DNA of 64,000 nucleotides from Bacillus subtilis subsp. subtilis str. 168 (GTDB lineage Bacteria > Bacillota > Bacilli > Bacillales > Bacillaceae), in assembly GCF_000009045.1 (NCBI RefSeq), contig NC_000964.3, forward strand, positions 3,038,001 through 3,102,000, read 5' to 3'. Shown one piece after another: positions 9,593 to 52,413 of this stretch; positions within the stretch are counted from its first letter, which is position 1; every line of letters begins with the position of its first letter. Both the position numbers and the translations under genes were made by a program. The notes below the pieces were generated by a model, which was given only the letters and a program-made list of their open reading frames with translations, made no database searches and had not been told where the DNA came from.

Positions 9593-10015
9593 TTACAGGG
9601 CTGATTTTTTCTTTTGCTTCCATTTCTCCCAAATTTCCATTGCTGCTTGACTCCAAGTGACAACTTGATTGATCTTATCTTGATTCTCTCTAACTGATGC
9701 CGATACAGACCCTGCCGCTTGTTTCATGGATGTATTGAACTGCTGTACAGAAGCTCCCACTCCTTGAACAGCATGAACGACCGTGTTCAGCTTTTCTGAT
9801 TTTTCCTGAATATCTTCAGCCAGGCGGTTGGTCTTATGTAAAAGCTCGGCTGTTTCAGTTGTGATGCCCTTCATTTGTCCCTCCAGCCCTTCAAGAGTGG
9901 ATGCGACGTTTTTTAGTGTCAGCTGCAGTGACTTCAATGTTTTAGACAAGTAGATCACTAATACGAGAAATGCAACTGCGATGAGTGCAACGCTCAAATA
10001 AAGAATAATAATCAT
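9593..10015 (-). CDS. ytxG: DUF948 membrane-anchored coiled-coil protein (FacZ-like)
   Basis: N-terminal TM helix plus coiled coil; first gene of the sigmaB/sigmaH operon. Confidence 0.9.
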
Positions 10016-11724: not shown

Positions 11725-14583
11725 TTATTCGTTTATTAAATCACTTGCTGTGATCAGCACCTCTCGAGGCTTGCTTCCTTTTGCCTCAGAGATCATGCCT
11801 TCCGCTTCCATCATGTCGATCAGCCTTGCCGCACGATTGTAACCGATTCTGAATCTTCTTTGCAGGCTTGAAGTGCTCGCACTGTTTTGCTCTACAACAA
11901 ACTCACACGCTTCGTAAAACAGTTCGTCCTCTTCTTTCAGGGCAGATCCTTGTCTTACGAGCTCTTCTTGTTCAAATAAATAGGTCGGCGGCATTTGGCT
12001 TCTGACGTGGGAAACGACGCGGTCGATTTCCCGGTCTGACACAAAGTTACCTTGCAGACGAACCGGTTTTCCCGAGCCGTTTTCCAAAAAGAGCATATCC
12101 CCTTTTCCGAGAAGCTTTTCTGCACCGGCTATATCAATAATTGTTCGGGAATCAACCTGGCTTGAGACAGAAAAGGCGATTCTCGTTGGGATATTCGCCT
12201 TAATCAGACCTGTAATGACATCGACTGACGGACGCTGAGTTGCGACGAGAAGATGGATACCGCACGCTCTGGCTTTTTGGGCGATCCGCGCAATGCTTTC
12301 TTCCACATCGTTTGGAGCCACCATCATCAAATCTGCAAGCTCATCAATAATGACAACTAAATACGGCAGCTTTTCACCCATTTGGTGTTCAGCGGTTAAT
12401 TGATTAAAGCGGTCAATGTCGCGGACACCTGAATGGGCAAAAAGCTCATAGCGGCGCTCCATTTCCTCAACGACCCATTTCAAAGCAGCCGTAGCCGCTT
12501 TAGCATCAGTAATGACCGGGCTGACGAGGTGAGGAATTTTATTGTAAGGGGCCAGCTCTACCATTTTCGGATCAATCAGCAGCACCTTTACCTCACTCGG
12601 GTCAGCTTTATAAAGCAGGCTTACTAATATTGTATTGATGCATACGCTTTTTCCGGAGCCTGTAGCGCCGGCAATCAAGCCATGCGGCATTTTCTTCAAG
12701 TCGATAACAACAGGATTTCCCGAAATATCTAATCCCAGCGCAGCTGTGAGCGGTGACTTGCTTGTCCTGAAAGCTGAGCTGCGAATCATTTGGCGCAAAT
12801 CAACCACCTTGCTCGTGCGGTTCGGCACTTCAATTCCGATCGTGTTTTTCCCCGGAATCGGCGCTTCAATCCGAATATCTTTAGCTGAGAGACTGAGTTT
12901 AATATCATCGGACAAGTTGGTGATTTTATTCACCTTTACACCCGGTTCAGGATGCACTTCAAATCTCGTGACAGACGGACCCTGGGTTACATGGACCACA
13001 TTGGCGCGGACATTGAAATTTTTCAAGGTCAAATCAAGAAGCTGACGCTGTTCTTCGATCCACGCAGTATCATCTTGAACCTGCGCTGGCGGGACATCAA
13101 GCAGTGCAACATTCGGAAATACATAGCTGCCGCGGCGCTCCTCTGCTTTTTGCTGTTTATGCGTATCTCTTTTCAGCATCATCACATTAAAAGGAACGGA
13201 TGGCCCTTTTTGAGAAGATGCGCTTTGTTCAGTCCTTTTCTCCTGTACACCAGGCCTTTTTTTCGGCTCTTCTGAAGCTTCGCGAGGTTTGTCTGCGCGA
13301 ATTTCCTGCCGGTTTTCAAGAGTTGCAGTAGACGATTTGGAACCCTGCTCCATGTGTTCAGTTTTCTCAAGCTCTGTATGGCTGTCTGGCTGAACATCTA
13401 TCTTCGTTTCCTGAGCCTCTCCCAGGGTGTCATAATGATTATTTATTATGCTTTCTGATGGCTCTTCTGATTCTTTTGCCACAGTTTCTGCTTGAGCCAG
13501 AGCCTCTGATGAATACTCATGATCAGTAAATAAAGGCTCTTCCTGACGAATGTCCATTTGTTCTTCTTGAACGAACGGGGACTCAGCACCTTCTGCCGCG
13601 TTTTCATGATGATTGTATACTGGGCTGTCTGACGGCTCTTTTGCTTTTTCATCCTCAGATACTGCCTCTGTCTGAGATTCAGGAGCTGTTTGCTCTTCAT
13701 CAAGTTCAGCGGAGAAAACAGGCTCTTCAAATTTCTCTGGCTGCTGCTCCCTTTGTTCTTCCTCAGCCGTTGCAGGCTCTTCGCGGCCTACTTCACTGTC
13801 TGAAAGCCCTTCAGCCGCCGTATCTGTGAGCATCTCAGGCGGTGTTTGCTCTTCGGCTTGTTCAGCTGGGAAGAAAGGCTCCTCTTTTTCCGGCTGTTGA
13901 ACGCCTGACTCAAATGGCACTTTGTTACCTGACGGCTCGGCTGGCCGTTTCGCCAGCGCCTCATCATGCTCCGTATCCTTTCTGTTTAAAACGCCAGAAG
14001 GCTGTTTTTCAAATTGGGTATCCGGGAAGAAAGGACTTTCTATTTTGGAATGCGCCTGTGTGTCTGAAGCAGGATAGCCGCGTTCACGTTCGATCTCTTC
14101 TGACAGCAGTGTTACCTTCTCTTTTACCGATTTATCCGGTTCGTTCAATGTTTCAGAAGGCTTTTTCGGCACATCCTTTTTAACAGATGGTTTTTGATTG
14201 AATCCATAGACAGGCGAAGGGATATTTGTCGGTTTAAACGGTTTCTTCGCCGGCTCTGCTGCTTGATATGTATGCTGCTCTTCTTCATTTCTGGGACGCT
14301 CTCTGTAAGGTGCAGCACTTGGACGAGGCGCGGATTTCGGTTCGTCCGATGGTGTGCGGCGCCTTCTCAGGTCATGATTTTTGTATCCGTCAGGCACGAC
14401 TGGAAAACGGAATTTGCCTTTTGGATATTCATAATATATTTTAGGATCTTCCAATCTTTTTAATTGTCCTTCAGGATGATGTACTTCTTGTTGCTGCGGA
14501 ATTTGAGCGGGTTTTGTCTCCCGTTCAGCATCCTCTTCGCTTTCGCCTAAAAACAAATCAAAAAATTTATGAAGCCAACTCAT
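11725..14583 (-). CDS. sftA: Soluble FtsK/SpoIIIE-family DNA translocase
   Basis: C-terminal FtsK motor (AGATGSGKS, DELADLM) and gamma domain (SLQRRFRIGYNRAARL); acidic disordered linker; no TM segment. Confidence 0.97.
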   Translation of the reverse strand: MSWLHKFFDLFLGESEEDAERETKPAQIPQQQEVHHPEGQLKRLEDPKIYYEYPKGKFRFPVVPDGYKNHDLRRRRTPSDEPKSAPRPSAAPYRERPRNEEEQHTYQAAEPAKKPFKPTNIPSPVYGFNQKPSVKKDVPKKPSETLNEPDKSVKEKVTLLSEEIERERGYPASDTQAHSKIESPFFPDTQFEKQPSGVLNRKDTEHDEALAKRPAEPSGNKVPFESGVQQPEKEEPFFPAEQAEEQTPPEMLTDTAAEGLSDSEVGREEPATAEEEQREQQPEKFEEPVFSAELDEEQTAPESQTEAVSEDEKAKEPSDSPVYNHHENAAEGAESPFVQEEQMDIRQEEPLFTDHEYSSEALAQAETVAKESEEPSESIINNHYDTLGEAQETKIDVQPDSHTELEKTEHMEQGSKSSTATLENRQEIRADKPREASEEPKKRPGVQEKRTEQSASSQKGPSVPFNVMMLKRDTHKQQKAEERRGSYVFPNVALLDVPPAQVQDDTAWIEEQRQLLDLTLKNFNVRANVVHVTQGPSVTRFEVHPEPGVKVNKITNLSDDIKLSLSAKDIRIEAPIPGKNTIGIEVPNRTSKVVDLRQMIRSSAFRTSKSPLTAALGLDISGNPVVIDLKKMPHGLIAGATGSGKSVCINTILVSLLYKADPSEVKVLLIDPKMVELAPYNKIPHLVSPVITDAKAATAALKWVVEEMERRYELFAHSGVRDIDRFNQLTAEHQMGEKLPYLVVIIDELADLMMVAPNDVEESIARIAQKARACGIHLLVATQRPSVDVITGLIKANIPTRIAFSVSSQVDSRTIIDIAGAEKLLGKGDMLFLENGSGKPVRLQGNFVSDREIDRVVSHVRSQMPPTYLFEQEELVRQGSALKEEDELFYEACEFVVEQNSASTSSLQRRFRIGYNRAARLIDMMEAEGMISEAKGSKPREVLITASDLINE
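13678..13899 (-). repeat. Imperfect intragenic duplication (two copies of about 22 aa) in the SftA linker
   Basis: QQPEKEEPFFPAEQAEEQTPPE (13899-13834) versus QQPEKFEEPVFSAELDEEQTAPE (13746-13678); core about 40/51 nt identical by eye. Confidence 0.75.
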
Positions 14584-14675
14584 AATTTATCTCTAACTCC
14601 CTTATAGTTTTCTGGGACGGTTTTTAGTATACCACTGCTGGTCGGCCCAGAAAAGATTAAGCTATCAGCAGAAAC

Positions 14676-14706
14676 AAAGCCGCTAAACAAGGGCTTAGCG
14701 GCTTTT
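14676..14706. terminator. Hairpin/terminator after ytpR
   Basis: AAAGCCGCTAA-8nt-TTAGCGGCTTT. Confidence 0.75.
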
Positions 14707-14742
14707 CACATGATTCGTTTTTTTTGGCGGATTTATGGGAGT

Positions 14743-15348
14743 CTAAAACTGAAATGCGTCTCCCGCCTCATAGTCTCCTTCTAACACAAGGATTCCTTTT
14801 TCAGCAGGGGCATCCGGCAAATCAAGCTCTTTCGCTGAGCAGATCATCCCGCTTGACGGAACGCCACGAAGCTCTGCATCCTTAATGACAAGTCCGCTAG
14901 GCATCACAGCACCGACTTTGGCAACGACAACTTTTTGGCCTTGGTCAACGTTAGGCGCGCCGCAGACGATCTGAAGCGTTTCTTCTCCTACGTTGACTTT
15001 ACATACGCTTAATTTATCCGCATTCGGATGTTTTTCTTTTGATTCTACATAACCCACAACAAACTTCGGAGATAAATCAACGACTAATGTTTCTTCAACG
15101 CCGTTTCTGTTTAAAATCTCATTCACATCTTGCACGAATGTTTCTGAGAGCGCAACAGGGCCGTTTTCATCAATGGTCAAGTAAGAAGACGCATTGAAAA
15201 TGTTGAAGCCCGTTGTTTCTTTTGTTTCGTTATTGAAAATTTTGACGACGTCGCCGTGTTTTTCATAGCCTAATTGTTCGCGTGTCACATCTTGAAGAGA
15301 GATCAGGAGCGTGTCTCCCACACCTTCTTTATTATAAAAAGCGTTCAT
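14743..15348 (-). CDS. ytpR: tRNA-binding OB-fold protein (PheT/EMAP-like C-domain)
   Basis: [15 protein letters not shown] and [12 protein letters not shown] motifs. Confidence 0.93.
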
Positions 15349-28450: not shown

Positions 28451-29386
28451 ATGTTGAAAATCGTTGCAAACACAGCTGATCTGATAGGAGATACACCGCT
28501 AGTGAGATTGAATCGGCTTCAGCCGGAAAATGCGGCACAAGTCTATTTAAAGCTTGAATTTTTCAATCCGAGCGGCAGTGTGAAAGACAGAGCCGCTTAT
28601 CAAATGATCATAGAAGCTGAACAAAACGGTTTACTCAAGCCGGGATCAGTTATTATAGAGCCGACAAGCGGAAATACCGGCATCGGGCTCGCCATGAATG
28701 CGGCAGCACGCGGATATAAAGCAATCTTAGTTATGCCTGATACGATGACGAAGGAACGGATCAACCTACTTAAAGCTTACGGTGCAGAGGTTGTATTAAC
28801 TCCCGGAGAGGAAAGAATGCCGGGCAGCATCAAAAAAGCGAAGGAGCTTGCCGAACAAATTCCGAACAGCTATATTCCAATGCAGTTCGATAACACTGCT
28901 AATCCTGATGCGCACCGAAAAACAACAGCGCCTGAAATCGCCCGGGCAATAGAGGAAATCGGAAAACCGCTCGGCGCTTTTGTAGCCTCCTCTGGAACGG
29001 GCGGAACCATTACCGGAACAGGTGAGGCGCTCAAAGAGCTTTTTCCGGATATCACGGTTCATGTTGTTGAGCCAGCGGGTTCGCCTGTATTATCCGGCGG
29101 AAAACCTGGCGCGCATAAACTTGTAGGAACGAGCCCAGGCTTTATACCGCCGATTTTAAATGAAGACGTTTATGATGAAATTATCAAAATCTCTGATGAA
29201 GACGCGTATACGACGACAAGACGGCTTGCTGCTGAAGAAGGAATTCTTGTCGGTCCTTCATCAGGCGCTGCCTGCTTCGCGGCAATCGAAACAGCGAAAC
29301 GCCTCTCTCCTGACAAAGTTGTGGTCTGCATGACAGCTGATACAGGAGAACGGTACTTATCAACTGATTTATGGTCATTTATTTAA
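28451..29386 (+). CDS. ytkP: Cysteine synthase-like PLP enzyme (CysK paralogue)
   Basis: SVKDR PLP-lysine, EPTSGNTG and GTGGT motifs. Confidence 0.93.
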   Translation: MLKIVANTADLIGDTPLVRLNRLQPENAAQVYLKLEFFNPSGSVKDRAAYQMIIEAEQNGLLKPGSVIIEPTSGNTGIGLAMNAAARGYKAILVMPDTMTKERINLLKAYGAEVVLTPGEERMPGSIKKAKELAEQIPNSYIPMQFDNTANPDAHRKTTAPEIARAIEEIGKPLGAFVASSGTGGTITGTGEALKELFPDITVHVVEPAGSPVLSGGKPGAHKLVGTSPGFIPPILNEDVYDEIIKISDEDAYTTTRRLAAEEGILVGPSSGAACFAAIETAKRLSPDKVVVCMTADTGERYLSTDLWSFI

Positions 29387-42630: not shown

Positions 42631-45225
<2,595 letters not shown>

Positions 45226-45260
45226 TTTTTCCTAGCCTCCTTTCACGGATTCTTGCATTC

Positions 45261-45304
45261 ACTGTAGCGCAGCAGGCAAAAGTCCGTCTACAATCATATG
45301 ATCA
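45261..45304 (-). promoter_or_regulatory. Putative yteP promoter with proximal operator
   Basis: TGATCATATGATTG abuts TAGACG-N18-TACAGT; same layout as upstream of ytcP. Confidence 0.65.
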
Positions 45305-45368
45305 CATCCTGTTTTATCCCTTTATAATCAAGGGTTCAGCCGGTCCACCTGAAAAAAAGACACCGATA

Positions 45369-45383
45369 TTAGAAAATGATTAT
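45369..45383. promoter_or_regulatory. Distal conserved site (copy 1)
   Basis: TTAGAAAATGATTAT, identical to 50377-50391. Confidence 0.65.
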
Positions 45384-45440
45384 TGACAATATCTATCAAT
45401 CTTTGGATTAATTGTATTAAGGTGAAGTGGATGTTATGAA

Positions 45441-47759
45441 ATGGGGGGTTTTATGAAAAGAAGCCAATACAAGTTTTACTACAAACTGATCACGTTTTTC
45501 TGCCTGCTCAGCACCATTCCGGTTATTTTGGTCGGATTATTTTCGTACGAGCACTCTCAGAAAACGGCTATTTCCAACGTTTCGGAGGAAAAATTCGACA
45601 CACTCCAGCAGACCCAGCAAAGCATCGAGCATATATTGAAAACCGTCGATCACTCTTTAACCCACTATGTGAGTTCGCCGCCTCTCCTTCGCACATTGTC
45701 CGAGCCTTTGCACTCAGACCAATTTCAAATCTATAACCAAGTGAACCAAGAGCTCAATTATCTGCAAAGCTTTGATACCGATCTGTCCAACATGACGTTA
45801 GTCAGTTATACGAAAAAATGGTACATGAACAATTCCGGTTTGTACCGTTTGAATACAGACACTCTTCATGAAGCAGCCTCAGCGTACACGAAACAAAAAG
45901 CGAGCCGCTCCTATTGGACGCTTGAGGAAAACAATCATTTGATTTCAACCAAAGAAGGCACAGCAGAAAACTGCCGCTACAATATCAATTTAATTAAGCA
46001 GCTTCCTTTGAACAGCACAAATACAAAGGGATTGGCCGCCGCAAGCATCCCGAGCTGTTCGCTTGTCAAAAATATGCCCGGCTATTCAAACGCCAACAAC
46101 CTGTTTATCATCGATGAAAAAGGCCTCATCATCCTTCATAACAATATGTCTGACGTTGGTGAATCTCTTCATAACGACGGCTTTGTCCAAAAAGTGCTGG
46201 CGCAAACGGCCAATAGCGGACAGTTTGAAACAGTGATTGACCGGATTCATTATAAAGTCACCTATCAAAAATCTGACTATAATGCATGGACTTATTTTTC
46301 TCTCGTTTCCCTGCCTGAGTTAAAAAAAGAAGCCAAATCAATCGGCTGGATCACTTTTGCAGTATGCCTCATTTTGTTAACGCTTTCATTGCTGTTCTCT
46401 TGGCTTGGCTCCCGCCATTTTTACAAGCCGATCAGGGTGCTTTACGAATCATTCGCAAGACATGGAGCCATACAAGAGAAACAACAGCCTCCTCAAAATG
46501 AATTTGAGTTAATTGAACAGAGCTTTAAGCAGCTGAAGGACAGAAATGACGACCTTGAAGAAACGATGAAGCAGCAGGCCACTCATCTGCAGCAATATTT
46601 TATGGTCAGGCTTATGCTTGGAAAACTGACGGATGAGGAGGTTGATAACCGTTTTGAAAGCCTCGGCTTAAAGCAAAATTGGCGGCACCTTGCCCTGCTT
46701 GTGCTCCAAATTGACACACTGAATCATACGCCTTATGAGAAAAAAGATATGGATCTGCTTTTGTTTGCCGTCAACAGCCTGATTGAGCGCAACATCCCGA
46801 CGGACAAACATCTTGCCCCCGCCGTAGTTGACAAACAGCAGGCGACGATTTTGATCAATCAAAGCGGGACAAAGGAAGAATTCATGGCTGAGCTGAATGA
46901 GACTGCAAGGATGATTCAGGAAAAAGCGGAAGCTGAGCTGCAGCTGTCTGTCAGCATCGGCATCAGCCAGCCGTTTGATGTGCTGACAAAAGCGAAAACA
47001 GCCTATGCGGAAGGCTCAGAAGCGTTGAAATATCGGCTGAAAGCGGAAAACAAGTCGATCATCTTTTACGAAGACCTTGACCAGAAAAAAACCTTCAAAA
47101 CCCATTTTCCAAAGCAGCTTCAGCATGAGCTGTTCGATGCTGTCAAAGCAGGAGACAAGGAGAAAGCGGATAAATGCCTGCACGCGATTTTACAAGCCAT
47201 TTTCACCCAGAACACCAACCCGTATCAATTTCAAATCGCCATCGCCCGTTTTTTGAACCATGTGATTGAGCTGATGCATGTGCTTGGGATCGAATTGTTT
47301 GAGCTTGAAGAAAACAAAATGCTGTATGACCAAATTTTTGAGCTGAAAACGTTCGAGGATACCGAAAACTGGCTAAAGAATGAGTTTATTGATCCGATGA
47401 CAGACAAAGTGAACGCCCGCGCGGATGCCCAGTACAAAAATATTTCCGACAACATCATTCATATCATCCATCATGAGTTTGAATCCGAATTGACACTGGA
47501 CGAAATCGCACGCAGGCTGCATTACAACCCAAATTATTTAAGCAGTATTTTCAAAAAAGAAATGGGAATTTCATTCAGCGAGTATGTCTCAAGCTACCGA
47601 CACCATATGGCGAAAAGCTGGCTTGCCGAAACCGACATGGCGGTCAAGGACATTGCCGAAAAGCTGAAATATAAAAACTCCCAAAACTTCATCAGATCAT
47701 TTAAGAAGCTGGAAGGGATTACACCGGGAAACTACCGCCAGCAAAAAAGAAGCATGTAA
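45441..47759 (+). CDS. ytdP: Membrane-anchored AraC-family regulator (TM, extracytoplasmic sensor, TM, AraC HTH)
   Basis: Two TM helices flank a loop of about 270 aa; C-terminal LDEIARRLHYNPNYLS...FIRSFKK. The true start may be ATG 45453 (GGGGGG RBS). Also annotated rmgR. Confidence 0.92.
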   Translation: MGGFMKRSQYKFYYKLITFFCLLSTIPVILVGLFSYEHSQKTAISNVSEEKFDTLQQTQQSIEHILKTVDHSLTHYVSSPPLLRTLSEPLHSDQFQIYNQVNQELNYLQSFDTDLSNMTLVSYTKKWYMNNSGLYRLNTDTLHEAASAYTKQKASRSYWTLEENNHLISTKEGTAENCRYNINLIKQLPLNSTNTKGLAAASIPSCSLVKNMPGYSNANNLFIIDEKGLIILHNNMSDVGESLHNDGFVQKVLAQTANSGQFETVIDRIHYKVTYQKSDYNAWTYFSLVSLPELKKEAKSIGWITFAVCLILLTLSLLFSWLGSRHFYKPIRVLYESFARHGAIQEKQQPPQNEFELIEQSFKQLKDRNDDLEETMKQQATHLQQYFMVRLMLGKLTDEEVDNRFESLGLKQNWRHLALLVLQIDTLNHTPYEKKDMDLLLFAVNSLIERNIPTDKHLAPAVVDKQQATILINQSGTKEEFMAELNETARMIQEKAEAELQLSVSIGISQPFDVLTKAKTAYAEGSEALKYRLKAENKSIIFYEDLDQKKTFKTHFPKQLQHELFDAVKAGDKEKADKCLHAILQAIFTQNTNPYQFQIAIARFLNHVIELMHVLGIELFELEENKMLYDQIFELKTFEDTENWLKNEFIDPMTDKVNARADAQYKNISDNIIHIIHHEFESELTLDEIARRLHYNPNYLSSIFKKEMGISFSEYVSSYRHHMAKSWLAETDMAVKDIAEKLKYKNSQNFIRSFKKLEGITPGNYRQQKRSM

Positions 47760-47793
47760 AAAACCCAAAACCGCTTGCGCGTTTTGGGTTTTT
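47758..47793. terminator. Bidirectional terminator ytdP/ytcQ
   Basis: AAAAACCCAAAAC-9nt-GTTTTGGGTTTTT. Confidence 0.9.
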
Positions 47794-47799
47794 CCAATG

Positions 47800-49296
47800 T
47801 TATTTTGCTTGTTTAAACGCTTCTTCGTATTCCTGAATAATTTGTTTTCCTCCGCTTGACTCCCATTTTTCCACTTCTTTATCGAACTGGCTTTCTGTGA
47901 TGTCTCCAATCATATATTTGTAGGTCGCGTCATCAATGATTTTCTTCAGTTCGTCACCCCGTTCCGACTCCGATGCGGAATACAGGCTTTCAGCCGGGTT
48001 TGAGACGATAATCTTTTCATTGTCCTCGGTCAGCTCCTCGTACGCCGTCCGAAGCGGATCTCCAGTGTTTTTTAAGTAGGCTTTATCAATGGCAATTAAA
48101 GCGGACAGCGGCTGAATATCAGTCTGCCAGTCTTTTACCTGGCTTTCTTTGCGTGTAAACGTTTTGTCCTCACCTTTGTTGTAATGAACGCCGTCAATGC
48201 CATAAGTCATCAGGCTATAGACATCTTCTTCGGCAATTCGGTCAAAAAACGCCAAGATCCGTTTAAGCTCAGCTTCCGTTTTCACACTCGTTTTCGGGAA
48301 AGCAAACACGCCGTTATGGCCTCCTGATGCCCATACCCGCTCTTTCCCATCTGGGCCTTTTATGCGGTTGATGATCTCGAGCTTCATCGATTTATCAGAG
48401 GCATGGTCGCGCAGATTGACCGCATCTACCATATTGCCAATATAAATTCCGGCTTTTCCTTGAGAAAACAGCTCTTGCTGCTGGGTTTTGCTTGTGACGG
48501 GAAAATCCTTATTCATATACCCGTTATCACGCAGCTTTTTCATATAGTTCATCGTGTCTTTGTATTCCTGTGTCATGAAATCAGGCGTGAATTTGCCGCC
48601 CGATTCCTTCCAATCTGTCGGCATGCCTTCATACGAGCCAATCGTTTTAAACGCGCCGTAAATCAAGTCATTACGGTCTGCCAGCCCGAATGTATCATCT
48701 TTCCCATCCTTGTCCGGGTCGTCCTCCGTAAATGCTTTGGCCACTTCATAAAGCTCATCCAACGTTTTCGGGGTTTTCAAATTTAAATTGTCCAGCCAGT
48801 CCTTCCGAATGACGATCCCCTGTCTGGAAAGCGGGCGCTCTCTGTATATCCCGTAGAGCTTGCCGTCAATTGTCACATTTTTATTAATGAGTTTGTTCAT
48901 TTTGTTTAAGTTGGGATAATCCTTGATATAATCGCCGATTTCCCAAAACATTCCTGACCGAAAGGCATTCATGACTGACGAATTTTTAATATCCTGGATG
49001 GTCACGATTTGCGGAAGATTGCCGGCTGCAAGCGCTGCATTCAGCCTGTCTTCTTTCACCGCGTCTGGAACCCAGGTGATGTCGAGTTCTGTATTTGTCA
49101 GCTTTTCAATTTCTTTAATCGCCCTGTCTTTCGGCGGCTGCTGGTGATACAAAATCGCCATCCAAGACAGCTTTACCTTTGAATCTGGGCCAGCTTTGCC
49201 TTCAGCCGAAGACTGATCAGTTCCTTTACAGCCCGCCAGCACTCCGCCGAGTGCCAGTACAAGCACAATCAAAAGCACCCTCCATTTGTTTCCCAT
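47800..49296 (-). CDS. ytcQ: Carbohydrate ABC substrate-binding lipoprotein, 498 aa
   Basis: Lipobox VLAGC; AGGGG RBS. Confidence 0.93.
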   Translation of the reverse strand: MGNKWRVLLIVLVLALGGVLAGCKGTDQSSAEGKAGPDSKVKLSWMAILYHQQPPKDRAIKEIEKLTNTELDITWVPDAVKEDRLNAALAAGNLPQIVTIQDIKNSSVMNAFRSGMFWEIGDYIKDYPNLNKMNKLINKNVTIDGKLYGIYRERPLSRQGIVIRKDWLDNLNLKTPKTLDELYEVAKAFTEDDPDKDGKDDTFGLADRNDLIYGAFKTIGSYEGMPTDWKESGGKFTPDFMTQEYKDTMNYMKKLRDNGYMNKDFPVTSKTQQQELFSQGKAGIYIGNMVDAVNLRDHASDKSMKLEIINRIKGPDGKERVWASGGHNGVFAFPKTSVKTEAELKRILAFFDRIAEEDVYSLMTYGIDGVHYNKGEDKTFTRKESQVKDWQTDIQPLSALIAIDKAYLKNTGDPLRTAYEELTEDNEKIIVSNPAESLYSASESERGDELKKIIDDATYKYMIGDITESQFDKEVEKWESSGGKQIIQEYEEAFKQAK

Positions 49297-49320
49297 CGTA
49301 CCCCTCCGTTTCATATTTCT

Positions 49321-50193
49321 TTATCCTTTGACAGATCCCAGCAAAGCTCCTTTTGCAAAATGCTTTTGTATAAACGGATAGACAAGCAGAACAGGGATGG
49401 TCGCCACCACTATGACCGCCATTTTAATGGTTTGCTCAGGCGGCGGGCTGCCCGACCCCATTTCAGACATATCCCCCTGCATACCGCTTGATACAATGAC
49501 GATTTGGCGCAGAAGCACCTGAATTGGCCATTTTGCTGAATCATTTAAGTACAAGATCGCTGTCATATACGTGTTCCAATACGTGACCGCATAAAATAGT
49601 GAAATCGTTGCGATCGCAGGAAGAGACAGCGGCAGCACAATTTTAAAGAATATGCCCAGATCATTGCACCCGTCAATTTTCGCGGACTCTTCCAGGCTTG
49701 ACGGGATATTTTGAAAGAAGTTTTTCAGAATGATCAGGTTAAAGGCATTAATGGCTGTCGGCAAAATAAGCGCCCAGTAAGAATCGAGCAATCCAAGCGA
49801 TTTGACCACAAGGAAAGTCGGAATCATGCCGCCGCTAAACAGCATCGTAAATACGACGAGAAACATGAGCGGCTGCCGGCCGATTAAATCACGGCGGGAT
49901 AACCCGTAAGCCATCAGTGACGAAAGAAACATGCTGACCGCAGTGCCTATCACTGTCACAAACACAGAAACAAGCAAACTCTTATAAATAATATCTGTTG
50001 AAAAAATGTAGCGATAAGCATCTAGCGAAAAAGTGGTCGGTATTAAAATAAATTTTTTCGACACGACTTCTTCTACTGTGGCAAAGGATGCTGCGATAAC
50101 ATGAATGAACGGAAGTACGCATATTAAAGCGAACATCAGCAAGAAACCATAAATCAACATATCAAACAGACGGTTTTTCAGTGAATGTGCGAT
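49321..50193 (-). CDS. ytcP: Carbohydrate ABC permease; start codon ambiguous (ATC 50193, GTG 50202 or CTG 50181)
   Basis: EAA loop LEESAKIDGC and FSGGMIP; the SD sequence points to an in-frame ATC. Confidence 0.9.
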   Translation of the reverse strand: MAHSLKNRLFDMLIYGFLLMFALICVLPFIHVIAASFATVEEVVSKKFILIPTTFSLDAYRYIFSTDIIYKSLLVSVFVTVIGTAVSMFLSSLMAYGLSRRDLIGRQPLMFLVVFTMLFSGGMIPTFLVVKSLGLLDSYWALILPTAINAFNLIILKNFFQNIPSSLEESAKIDGCNDLGIFFKIVLPLSLPAIATISLFYAVTYWNTYMTAILYLNDSAKWPIQVLLRQIVIVSSGMQGDMSEMGSGSPPPEQTIKMAVIVVATIPVLLVYPFIQKHFAKGALLGSVKG

Positions 50194-50209
50194 AGCTCCC
50201 ACCTCCCTT

Positions 50210-50223
50210 TGTAAGCGTTATCA
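50210..50223. promoter_or_regulatory. cre site in the ytcP leader
   Basis: TGTAAGCGTTATCA, near-consensus. Confidence 0.8.
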
Positions 50224-50267
50224 TATTTTTGGAAACCGAGCTCAGCATGTGACGATATCGTGTCTAA

Positions 50268-50311
50268 AATGTAGCAAATCTGTGATTGCCATGTCTATAA
50301 TCATTTGAACA
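50268..50311 (-). promoter_or_regulatory. Putative ytcP promoter with proximal operator
   Basis: TGTTCAAATGATTA abuts TAGACA-N18-TACATT (extended -10 TG). Confidence 0.7.
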
Positions 50312-50356
50312 GTGTCCCCGGCCGGGCGGGGGCTGCCGCGAATTGAGACCGATAAC

Positions 50357-50395
50357 AAAAGAAAAAGAGCATAATCTTAGAAAATGATTATGCTC
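50357..50395 (-). terminator. Terminator of the bio-ytbQ operon, overlapping the distal conserved site copy 2 (50377-50391)
   Basis: GAGCATAATC-9nt-GATTATGCTC followed by TTTTTCTTTT. Confidence 0.85.
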
Positions 50396-51149
50396 CGTTC
50401 TCCTCCTCGTTCAGAAGTTCAGCCGTATTGATTTGTGGCGAAAACCCAAGTTCATTCACGGCAGATTCAATGGACCATGGCCGGCCCGGATTATCAGAGA
50501 CGGCGTAATAAGTGCCATACCGGATGTTGGTCTCAATGGCGGCTTTGAAAATCGACAGCAGATCGGGGTGAGAAAGCAGTGTCTTTTTCGTCCGTTCTTT
50601 TTCATGCAGCGTATCCATTTCATCTGTCACGACTGTTCCGATTCGAAGGTTGATTACTGATAGCTTATTTTCCAAATAAAACAAATGGCCGATCTGTTCA
50701 GAGGTCAGCTTTAATACACCGTACAAGTTTTTTGACAGCGGATAATCGCTTGTTGTGATTTCCCGTCCTAAGAGCGAGCGCCCGTCTTTTTCATATACAT
50801 CTGTGACATGATTGCTGCTGGCGAACACGAGCTTTTGAATGCCGAGCTCCGCTGCCGCACGGCACAGATAATAGCTTGCCCTATAGAAAACATCCGTCAT
50901 TTTTTCAAACTCAGCGATGTCCATAATATCGTATTTGATTTTCACAGCGAGTAAATTCAAGATGGCATCGGTATCTTTTGGAATCTTCTTCAACAGCTCC
51001 TCATAATTTGCCGCGTCAGCCTGAATGGAAGAGGCTTTGCCATCGAAATGATCTTTATCAAGCACAGTCACTTCATAGTCTGAAATAAGCCCTTCAGCAA
51101 GCAGTCTCCCAATCACACCATTTCCGCCGGCGATCAGCACTTTTTTCAC
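50388..51149 (-). CDS. ytbQ: Extended SDR NAD-dependent dehydrogenase/epimerase (uronate dehydrogenase-like)
   Basis: GGNGVIG, FASSNH, YGVLK and LRIG motifs; GTG start. Confidence 0.88.
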   Translation of the reverse strand: MKKVLIAGGNGVIGRLLAEGLISDYEVTVLDKDHFDGKASSIQADAANYEELLKKIPKDTDAILNLLAVKIKYDIMDIAEFEKMTDVFYRASYYLCRAAAELGIQKLVFASSNHVTDVYEKDGRSLLGREITTSDYPLSKNLYGVLKLTSEQIGHLFYLENKLSVINLRIGTVVTDEMDTLHEKERTKKTLLSHPDLLSIFKAAIETNIRYGTYYAVSDNPGRPWSIESAVNELGFSPQINTAELLNEEENGA

Positions 51150-51225
51150 GATGTTCACTCCCCTTTTTTATAGATTGCCCATTTTCGGCGGGGCTGACAC
51201 TTTTTTGGCACTCACATTCTTAGGC

Positions 51226-52413
51226 TTATTCAAAAGTCACCGGCAGCTCCTCAAGCGCCCGAAATCCAAAAAGCGGCCGATACCGCCATTCAAAATCCGC
51301 AAGATTAAGGCTGGGCATTCGCTGCAGAAGAGTGTTAATCGCAATTTGCGCTTCTAATCGTGCCAGCGAGGACCCTAAGCAAACATGATGGCCATGCCCG
51401 AATGAAAGATGCGGATTAGGACTTCTCGTAATATCGAAGACATCGGGGTTCGTGAATATGCTAGGGTCTCGATTAGCCGCTCCTAACAAAAGATAGACTT
51501 GTTCTCCTTGACGGATCGTCACCCCGCAGATGTCAATATCCTCTGACGCAACTCTGGCTGTCATTTGCGTGGGGCTTTCATAGCGTAAACATTCCTCGAC
51601 TGCGGTACCAATAAGATCTGGATTTTCTCTCAGTTTCAAAAGCTGTTCTGGATGCTGCAGCAGACAAAGGACTGAATTGCTGATGAGATTGACCGTTGTC
51701 TCATGTCCGGCGATCGCCAGCAATATGCACGTAGATGCCGCCTCCTCTTCCGTCAGCTTATCCTTTTCTCTCCCCTTCAAGAGCATGCTGATCATATCCT
51801 GTTGAGGGTGGCGTTTTCTCTTTTGAATCAGCTCTTTGAAATATGCCATAGCCTGCACAGCCATAATATTGCCCTCTGTTAATGCCTTTCTTGAGCGGGT
51901 AAAATCAATCGTTTGAATGAGACTCGCAGCCCACTCCTTTAATTGCTCCCTATCTTCCTCCGGTACACCTATAATGTTAGCTATGACAAAACTTGCTAAA
52001 GGAAAAGCAAAGTCCGAAATGACCTCCATCTTTTTTTTACCTTGCACTTGATCAAGCAAATGATGGACAGTTTCAATGATATACGGCTGATAACTCTCTG
52101 TCGTTCTCGGCGTAAACGCTCCGCTGGCAAGCGTCCGCAATCGTCTATGATCAGGCTGGTTCTGAAACAGCATCATTTGATTTTGCACATGTGAAAGGTC
52201 CTGATATTTGGTTGAGCTCTCAGGCAGCGGGGTGCGGACTTTGAATCTCGCATCTTTCAAAATAGCAGCCGTTTCTTCATATCCTGTGACATACCAGCCC
52301 GGGTATTTTAAGAAACTCCCTTTATAGATAGGATGAACAGCTCGCAATGTGTCGTAAAAAGAATATGGGTTTTTCAAAAACTCAGAAGATGCAGTTGACG
52401 ATGCAATTGTCAC
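51226..52413 (-). CDS. bioI: Cytochrome P450 BioI, 395 aa
   Basis: AGHETT, ECLR and [10 protein letters not shown] motifs; GTG start after AAGGAG. Confidence 0.97.

Follow-up and report, generated by a model that had tools for sequence, protein, structure and literature searches.

A conserved element around ytdP marks a candidate regulon of rhamnogalacturonan importer genes in Bacillus subtilis

In a stretch of 64,000 nucleotides (nt) of the Bacillus subtilis 168 genome (NC_000964.3, 3,038,001–3,102,000, forward strand; hereafter the window, within which all positions are counted), a conserved DNA element recurs around ytdP, which encodes a predicted membrane-anchored AraC-type regulator and lies among the genes of a rhamnogalacturonan importer in the order yteP (−), ytdP (+), ytcQ (−), ytcP (−), ytbQ (−). 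Judged by sequence comparison, this element is a real cis-regulatory module and outlines a solid candidate regulon. We consider it probable that the locus-specific regulator YtdP uses this element as its operator, in a joint reading that includes activation, autoregulation and paired sites. The importer genes are divided between two operons, and no study of their control was found in the accessible literature.

An earlier reading of the same DNA from its letters (the sequence-only reading) had described a twin promoter layout upstream of yteP (region 1) and ytcP (region 2), and its elements are real. The promoters TAGACG-N18-TACAGT (minus strand, 45290–45261) and TAGACA-N18-TACATT (minus strand, 50297–50268) are found as it gave them, and so are the proximal sites GTCTACAATCATATGATCA (45286–45304) and GTCTATAATCATTTGAACA (50293–50311), which are alike at 16 of 19 bases. 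Its distal 15-mer, TTAGAAAATGATTAT, occurs exactly at 45369–45383 and 50377–50391, starting 83 and 84 bp beyond the respective proximal site. What has to be revised is the twin layout itself, since the distal site of region 1 belongs to a third promoter. There the 15-mer and a TTGACA hexamer share one base, the first T of the hexamer, and an invariant TGgATTAAT follows 18 nt on, which marks ytdP's own putative promoter. In promoter orientation, the three candidate promoters read TGATCATATGATTGTAGACG-N18-TACAGT (PyteP), TTAGAAAATGATTATTGACA-N18-ATTAAT (PytdP) and TGTTCAAATGATTATAGACA-N18-TACATT (PytcP), and they share one register, in which site and −35 box overlap by a single base (the last of the site, the first of the box) and the −10 box comes after 18 nt. 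Thus, a single kind of site accounts for both the “proximal” and the “distal” elements, and its occurrence at PytdP as well as at the two importer promoters implies autoregulation.

Both PyteP (TAGACG/TACAGT) and PytcP (TAGACA/TACATT) have poor hexamers, and the −35 box of PytdP is the consensus TTGACA. Class II sites in the AraC/XylS family are expected to be asymmetric, to span ~17–20 bp and to abut or overlap, in a fixed register, the −35 box of a weak sigma-A promoter, and the sites described here conform to this arrangement. Position weights from the pooled sites describe a site of ~18 bp, TnAnAAA-ATGATTRT, with information reaching ~10 nt 5′ of the core; the 15-mer is therefore essentially the consensus. 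In the yteP–ytdP intergenic region, sites A and B face outward from each other, 86 bp apart from core to core, and sites C and D form a second outward-facing pair upstream of ytcP, at 87 bp (Table 1). An adjacent repeat with a period of ~21 bp, as in the classical two-site operators of the AraC/XylS family, was not conserved anywhere in the alignment, and a candidate second half-site, TTGATTATA, 34 bp upstream of site A, was rejected because it is not conserved there either. The pumilus and licheniformis groups carry a direct copy (AAGAAAATGATCC / GATAAAATGAAAC; for example, locus L009 at ~9905–9945 and locus L019 at ~9900–9940) 19 bp upstream of site B, and its B. subtilis counterpart, GAAAAAAAGACAC (45351–45363), is degenerate.

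Table 1. Genes, candidate promoters and candidate sites around ytdP, with positions counted within the window.
Feature	Positions	Strand	Description	Basis
yteP	44260–45225	−	ATP-binding cassette (ABC) permease, Pfam BPD_transp_1; heads yteP-yteR-yteS-yteT-yteU	open reading frame (ORF) and orthologues
PyteP −10 box	45261–45266	−	TACAGT	sequence and alignment
PyteP −35 box	45285–45290	−	TAGACG, 18-nt spacer	sequence and alignment
Site A	45286–45307	−	core ATGATTGT at 45297–45290 plus A-rich 5′ part; last base of core is first base of −35	
Site B	45366–45388	+	distal 15-mer of region 1; core ATGATTAT at 45376–45383, fused to TTGACA at 45383–45388	
PytdP extended −10	45404–45412	+	TGgATTAAT, 18 nt past TTGACA	
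ytdP	45441–47759	+	membrane-anchored regulator, dCache_1, GGDEF_2-like and AraC helix-turn-helix (HTH) domains	ORF and Pfam
ytcQ	47800–49314	−	solute-binding lipoprotein of the importer	ORF and Pfam; function from PMC5730181
ytcP	49321–50202	−	second ABC permease, Pfam BPD_transp_1; heads ytcP-ytcQ	
Candidate cre box	50210–50223		TGTAAGCGTTATCA, ytcP leader; possible CcpA catabolite-repression site	
Palindrome	50252–50261		perfect 10-bp palindrome ACGATATCGT, just 3′ of PytcP −10, ~+1 to +10	
PytcP −10 box	50268–50273	−	TACATT, preceded by TGc (extended −10)	promoter scan; AATGTA invariant
PytcP −35 box	50292–50297	−	TAGACA, 18-nt spacer	sequence and scan
Site C	50293–50314	−	core ATGATTAT at 50304–50297 plus 5′ part; −35 register as at sites A and B	
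ytbQ intrinsic terminator	50357–50396	−	hairpin 50396–50366, U-tract 50365–50357	
Site D	50374–50391	+	distal 15-mer of region 2; promoterless orphan, oriented away from ytcP	
ytbQ	50388–51158	−	stop codon 50388–50390	ORF

The recurrence of the element far exceeds what chance would supply in the window. The 15-mer has two exact copies, every other match carrying three mismatches, and the degenerate 19-mer has three matches at up to three mismatches against 0.11 expected; the third of these (28597–28615) falls within a cysK-like coding sequence and was set aside as chance. Of 1,000 shuffles, 1 produced an exact run of at least 15 bases common to the two intergenic regions. Although the core ATGATTRT itself occurs 8 times on the forward and 11 times on the reverse strand, the only outward-facing core pairs 30–200 bp apart are 45290/45376 (86 bp) and 50297/50384 (87 bp), where ~0.08 pairs would be expected in the 50–105 bp range. 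One-mismatch matches to ATGATTRTWGAC at 2751, 2889, 13609 and 47902 were set aside for want of a partner (that at 47902 also lies in coding sequence), as were those inside yteP or bio genes of related loci, which are coding and likewise unpartnered. An Rfam scan of 44000–51500 gave no match at the gathering score.

To follow the element across species, we took 80 loci with 10-kb flanks from an alignment of YtdP orthologues; the footprinting set comprised 22 orthologous loci for region 1 and 23 genomes for region 2, from the subtilis, atrophaeus, pumilus and licheniformis groups. The split layout (yteP, divergent ytdP, ytcQ-ytcP) is found at 22 loci in these four groups. In the outgroups, the binding-protein gene, yteP and ytcP form a single operon, and yteR through yteU are divergent from ytdP; the split layout is therefore derived. 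When the orthologous upstream regions were aligned across Bacillus, as the sequence-only reading had proposed, hexamers and sites stayed invariant. The invariant runs of at least 5 nt in region 1 are TCTACAATCAT (45287–45297), AAAATGATTATTGACA (45373–45388), GGATTAAT (45405–45412) and the ribosome-binding site and start of ytdP; those in region 2 are AAGCG, CGATATCGT, AATGTA, GTCTATAATCAT (50293–50304) and ATGAT (50384–50388). Identity between clades is 75–100% in the sites and 31–55% in the spacers. The −10 box of PyteP reads TACAGT in the subtilis group and the pumilus group alike, whereas the licheniformis group has either that hexamer or TAAAGT (5–6 of 6 bases identical between clades).

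The module also extends well beyond these groups. In outgroup genera (including Metabacillus, Sutcliffiella, Lederbergia, Anaerobacillus, Amphibacillus, Gracilibacillus, Paenibacillus and Fredinandcohnia), ATGATTRT with a −35-like hexamer is found upstream of ytdP, yteR, yteP and binding-protein genes. An inverted partner core lies almost exclusively 61–104 bp upstream, measured from start to start of the 12-mers, with a peak at 90–99 bp and lesser groups at ~72 and ~82 bp, and direct repeats show no comparable peak. Outward-facing pairs outnumber inward-facing ones by 38 to 1 in the split-layout clade and by 32 to 12 in the outgroups. Every outward pair lies between genes; the commonest core separation among them is 86 bp, as in B. 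subtilis, with spacers that cannot be aligned. The inverted-orientation pairing proposed in the sequence-only reading thus recurs beside ytdP orthologues in distant genera. Its equal 83/84-bp spacing is likewise present in B. subtilis but is not specific to the twin regions, ~86 bp being the ancestral modal spacing. Promoter-proximal members of the pairs have a TAnnnT hexamer only at a 17- or 18-nt spacer, in 55 of 80 unique contexts (14 of 42 for orphan members), and promoterless orphan partners occur in non-divergent contexts at L049, L051, L053, L058, L067 and L073.

Two variants of the layout were seen among the outgroups. Fredinandcohnia-type loci (L033, L036, L039, L041, L042 and L048, at ~9936) have a third core ~74 bp past the ytdP-side site, near the ytdP start, so that some operators may have three sites. 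The ytdP promoter of Paenibacillus (L054, L059–L063, L065 and L078, at ~9912–9957) reads ATGATTATTGAAT-N17-TACAAT, and directly after its −10 box comes another ATGATTAT (TACAATGATTATAC), which repeats the first one in direct orientation 34 bp further downstream.

The protein encoded between the two regions has the parts that such an operator would call for. Pfam places dCache_1 at residues 53–286 of YtdP, GGDEF_2 at 395–530 and an AraC HTH domain at 677–768, where both HTH_18 (3.5e-22) and HTH_AraC (6e-20) match, giving the C-terminal dual HTH of the AraC/XylS family. Hydrophobic segments at residues ~15–35 and ~302–322 flank the Cache domain, and YtdP is therefore predicted to be membrane-anchored. 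This agrees with the sequence-only reading, which had called YtdP a membrane-anchored AraC protein; Pfam also bears out the gene calls, with YteP and YtcP as permeases, YtcQ as a binding protein and YtdP as AraC-type. Solved structures match the DNA-binding domain only (YesN-type regulators, MarA, RamA, SoxS, Rob and AraC). The HTH recognition helices are invariant in aligned orthologues down to 36% identity, which fits the invariant core of the sites. Full-length relatives of YtdP number ~1,026 clusters at 50% identity (E ≤ 1e-30).

Translation of ytdP probably starts at ATG 45453 rather than at the called ATG 45441, because the latter overlaps the invariant ribosome-binding site GGGGG (45443–45447), while ATG 45453 is conserved; the protein would then be shorter by four residues. 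A natural truncated allele of ytdP was seen in Bacillus glycinifermentans GO-13 (locus L024, 9930–10060), where a deletion of ~0.5 kb fuses the PyteP site to about codon 115 of ytdP, with loss of site B and the ytdP promoter and, on the protein side, of the first membrane segment and some of the Cache domain. Other strains of B. glycinifermentans have the full-length gene (P0028).

Under the reading that we favor, YtdP, crossing the membrane twice, would sense extracellular fragments of pectin or rhamnogalacturonan through its dCache domain, and each of its AraC domains would bind one site. It could then activate both importer operons together with yteR–yteU by class II contact with RNA polymerase, and feed back on PytdP. 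Paired sites would probably be held by one YtdP dimer or oligomer via a short loop or wrap, in which case the near-consensus sites B and D would help to load the weaker promoter-proximal sites A and C. In addition, the candidate catabolite-responsive element (cre) in the ytcP leader may add catabolite repression.

Several observations weigh against this reading. Searches of the literature on ytdP, RmgR and ytcQ/yteP found no study of ytdP regulation. Binding at PytdP could be neutral or negative, because the −35 box of this promoter is already consensus. Several Gracilibacillus promoters have only a one-mismatch partner, ~89 bp away. Pair separations cluster at ~72, 82 and 90 bp (Rayleigh p = 6e-4 at a 10.5-bp period with all values), but collapsing the ~90-bp class to one value raises p to ~0.05, which makes the helical phasing marginal. 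The spacing of the region 2 pair varies by clade (61, 69, 91 and 92–93 bp from start to start of the 12-mers); from core to core, it is ~55 bp in the licheniformis group, 65 bp in B. atrophaeus, 87 bp in the subtilis group and 88–89 bp in the pumilus group. Finally, site D is constrained by a hairpin, of which it supplies the loop and part of one arm, and by the ytbQ stop codon, with which it overlaps; in the licheniformis group its sequence is degenerate (TTAGAAGATGATAC).

The phasing, the spacing and the hairpin also speak for the alternative that each promoter has one independent YtdP site, with no cooperation or looping. Sites A and B would then simply form a compact divergent promoter region. 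The main role of D would be that of the ytbQ terminator; it could be what is left of a former divergent promoter, and its resemblance to the other sites would come from an AT-rich hairpin and shared ancestry. The hairpin is indeed strong (−19.6 kcal/mol, z = −4.0, with none of 200 shuffles as stable) and is followed by UUUUUCUUUU, so that a stable hairpin with a U-tract, as in rho-independent termination, coincides with site D and includes the ytbQ stop codon in its stem. In the position of a −35 box, site D has GCTCCG, and no promoter is found there. The 15-mer at site D is identical at 15 of 15 bases in the subtilis group and B. atrophaeus and at only 10–11 of 15 in the pumilus and licheniformis groups, where the terminator stems are also weaker; the shifting distance from C to D and the marginal phasing point the same way. 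Thus the distal site of region 2 in the sequence-only reading stands as an exact copy with a conserved core, but it doubles as a terminator.

The hairpin is nevertheless insufficient to explain site D. Its loop TTAGAA, which the hairpin could do without, is shared by the subtilis and licheniformis clades, and the pumilus group retains the core ATGATTATGC although the complementary arm has changed. Moreover, promoterless partners recur 61–100 bp upstream of non-divergent promoters in unrelated genera, and the 86-bp core spacing persists across lineages whose spacers cannot be aligned. We regard independent sites as an unlikely account, albeit the strongest of the alternatives, and retain paired binding by YtdP as the probable one.

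It is far less likely that another protein, such as a global regulator of the Fur/PerR or CodY kind, binds the motif, or that the motif is the operator of a repressor. The core does resemble part of a 7-1-7 Fur/PerR box, and a site touching the −35 box could occlude RNA polymerase. However, the best matches to known boxes are weak (7–10 of 14 for Fur, 8–11 of 14 for PerR and 8–10 of 15 for CodY), and the invariant positions, ATGATTRT with its A-rich 5′ part, are asymmetric rather than a close palindrome. The motif also follows ytdP orthologues and their transporter and hydrolase genes across many genera, and neither the ORF list nor Pfam gave a further regulator gene in the B. subtilis cluster. 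AraC-family proteins whose sites abut weak −35 boxes are typically activators, which weighs against the repressor variant. Least credible of all is that regions 1 and 2 resemble each other neutrally, because one of them arose by recent duplication when a rearrangement divided the importer genes: the derived split layout and the single importer operon of the outgroups would suit it, but regions 1 and 2 align only at islands that are invariant over four clades while the intervening DNA has diverged, and outgroups carry the same module at several promoters per locus, so that recent duplication was rejected as the origin of region 2.

The kind of mechanism envisaged for YtdP, in which an AraC-type activator binds at the −35 box and may loop the DNA, is familiar, whereas the operator architecture is possibly new. 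In Escherichia coli, AraC and MelR have a site over the −35 box and a second site at their own divergent promoter, and they combine autoregulation with looping. The ytdP module likewise joins a site at the −35 box of the target promoter to a second one at the divergent promoter of the regulator. AraC and MelR are, however, soluble proteins with adjacent half-sites and loops of ~180–210 bp, whereas here a single clear site has an inverted partner ~60–100 bp away and the regulator is predicted to be membrane-anchored. MarA, SoxS and Rob resemble the YtdP module in having one asymmetric site of ~20 bp, two HTH motifs and a fixed −35 register, but these stress regulators lack sensor domains and paired sites.

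The closest characterized relative of the YtdP system is YesS (RhgR), the AraC-family activator of the B. subtilis yes rhamnogalacturonan operon (PMC2788870; PMC5730181). YesS (761 aa) is similar in size to YtdP, has a C-terminal AraC domain and controls a cluster for pectin and rhamnogalacturonan I (RG-I) with a related importer, YesOPQ. It lies at another locus and is modulated by His-phosphorylated HPr, and its operator is not described in PMC2788870. In the hybrid two-component systems of Bacteroides (PMC13292587; PMC3878776), a membrane-spanning glycan sensor with AraC output controls polysaccharide utilization loci. These resemble the scheme proposed for YtdP in extracytoplasmic glycan sensing, AraC-type output and the control of local uptake and degradation genes, but they include histidine kinase and receiver modules, neither of which Pfam finds in YtdP. 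The latter may therefore be seen as a one-component analogue of these systems.

A bolder proposal, rather doubtful at present but with some real chance of holding, is that regulators of the dCache-AraC type represented by YtdP and YesS use an obligate operator of two outward-facing sites, 6–9 helical turns apart, which one membrane-tethered dimer wraps or loops. If this were true, a weak site at the target promoter would depend for its licensing on its partner, whether a strong site at the promoter of the regulator itself or an orphan hidden in the terminator of a neighbor, and the obligate paired operator would represent a distinct architecture for transcription at the membrane. With an 18-bp site, three candidate promoters and a paired layout that extends from Bacillus as far as Gracilibacillus and Amphibacillus, the regulation is open to direct testing and offers an entry point to a large and almost unstudied family of membrane-bound AraC sensors linked to plant-polysaccharide use in Firmicutes.

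The regulon itself may already be predicted in a database. RegPrecise is said to hold an RmgR regulon prediction (by Leyn et al., in 2013) that may concern the same regulator and gene set. Among the accessible papers, none naming both RmgR and rhamnogalacturonan was found.

Earlier work established YtcQP-YteP as an MsmX-energized importer of polygalacturonan and RG-I fragments and as the principal system by which B. subtilis takes up fragments of rhamnogalacturonan and polygalacturonan; upon deletion of ytcQ, the doubling time on RG-I rises from 189 to 496 min (PMC5730181). The same paper cites Ochiai et al. for induction of the importer genes by RG-I. In a rice-seedling microarray, yteP, ytcP, ytcQ, yteR and yteT drop jointly, to 0.20–0.31-fold (PMC4326333). 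Co-regulation of the importer genes fits both the published induction and the microarray data. Downstream of yteP, Pfam identifies a GH88 protein (yteR), a Gfo/Idh/MocA oxidoreductase (yteT) and a DUF624 protein (yteU).

Two further elements were found in the ytcP leader. The cre-like box agrees with TGNAANCGNWNNCA at 9 of 9 informative positions, as expected of a cre site, and its AAGCG is invariant in the 23 genomes. No cre-like equivalent was seen in the yteP leader, and catabolite repression may thus differ between the two importer operons. The palindrome ACGATATCGT, part of which (CGATATCGT) is invariant in the 23 genomes from four clades, is absent from region 1 and the yteP leader in the alignment and is a candidate operator of a second dimeric regulator.

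Between sites C and D, a GC-rich inverted repeat (50312–50340) occurs in the subtilis clade only. Some of its differences between species are compensatory, but its fold is no more stable than that of shuffled sequence (z = +0.85), and it was rejected as a structured element. Most pumilus-group genomes (for example, locus L009 at 12352–14917) have two extra plus-strand ORFs, of 452 and 279 aa, between ytdP and ytcQ.

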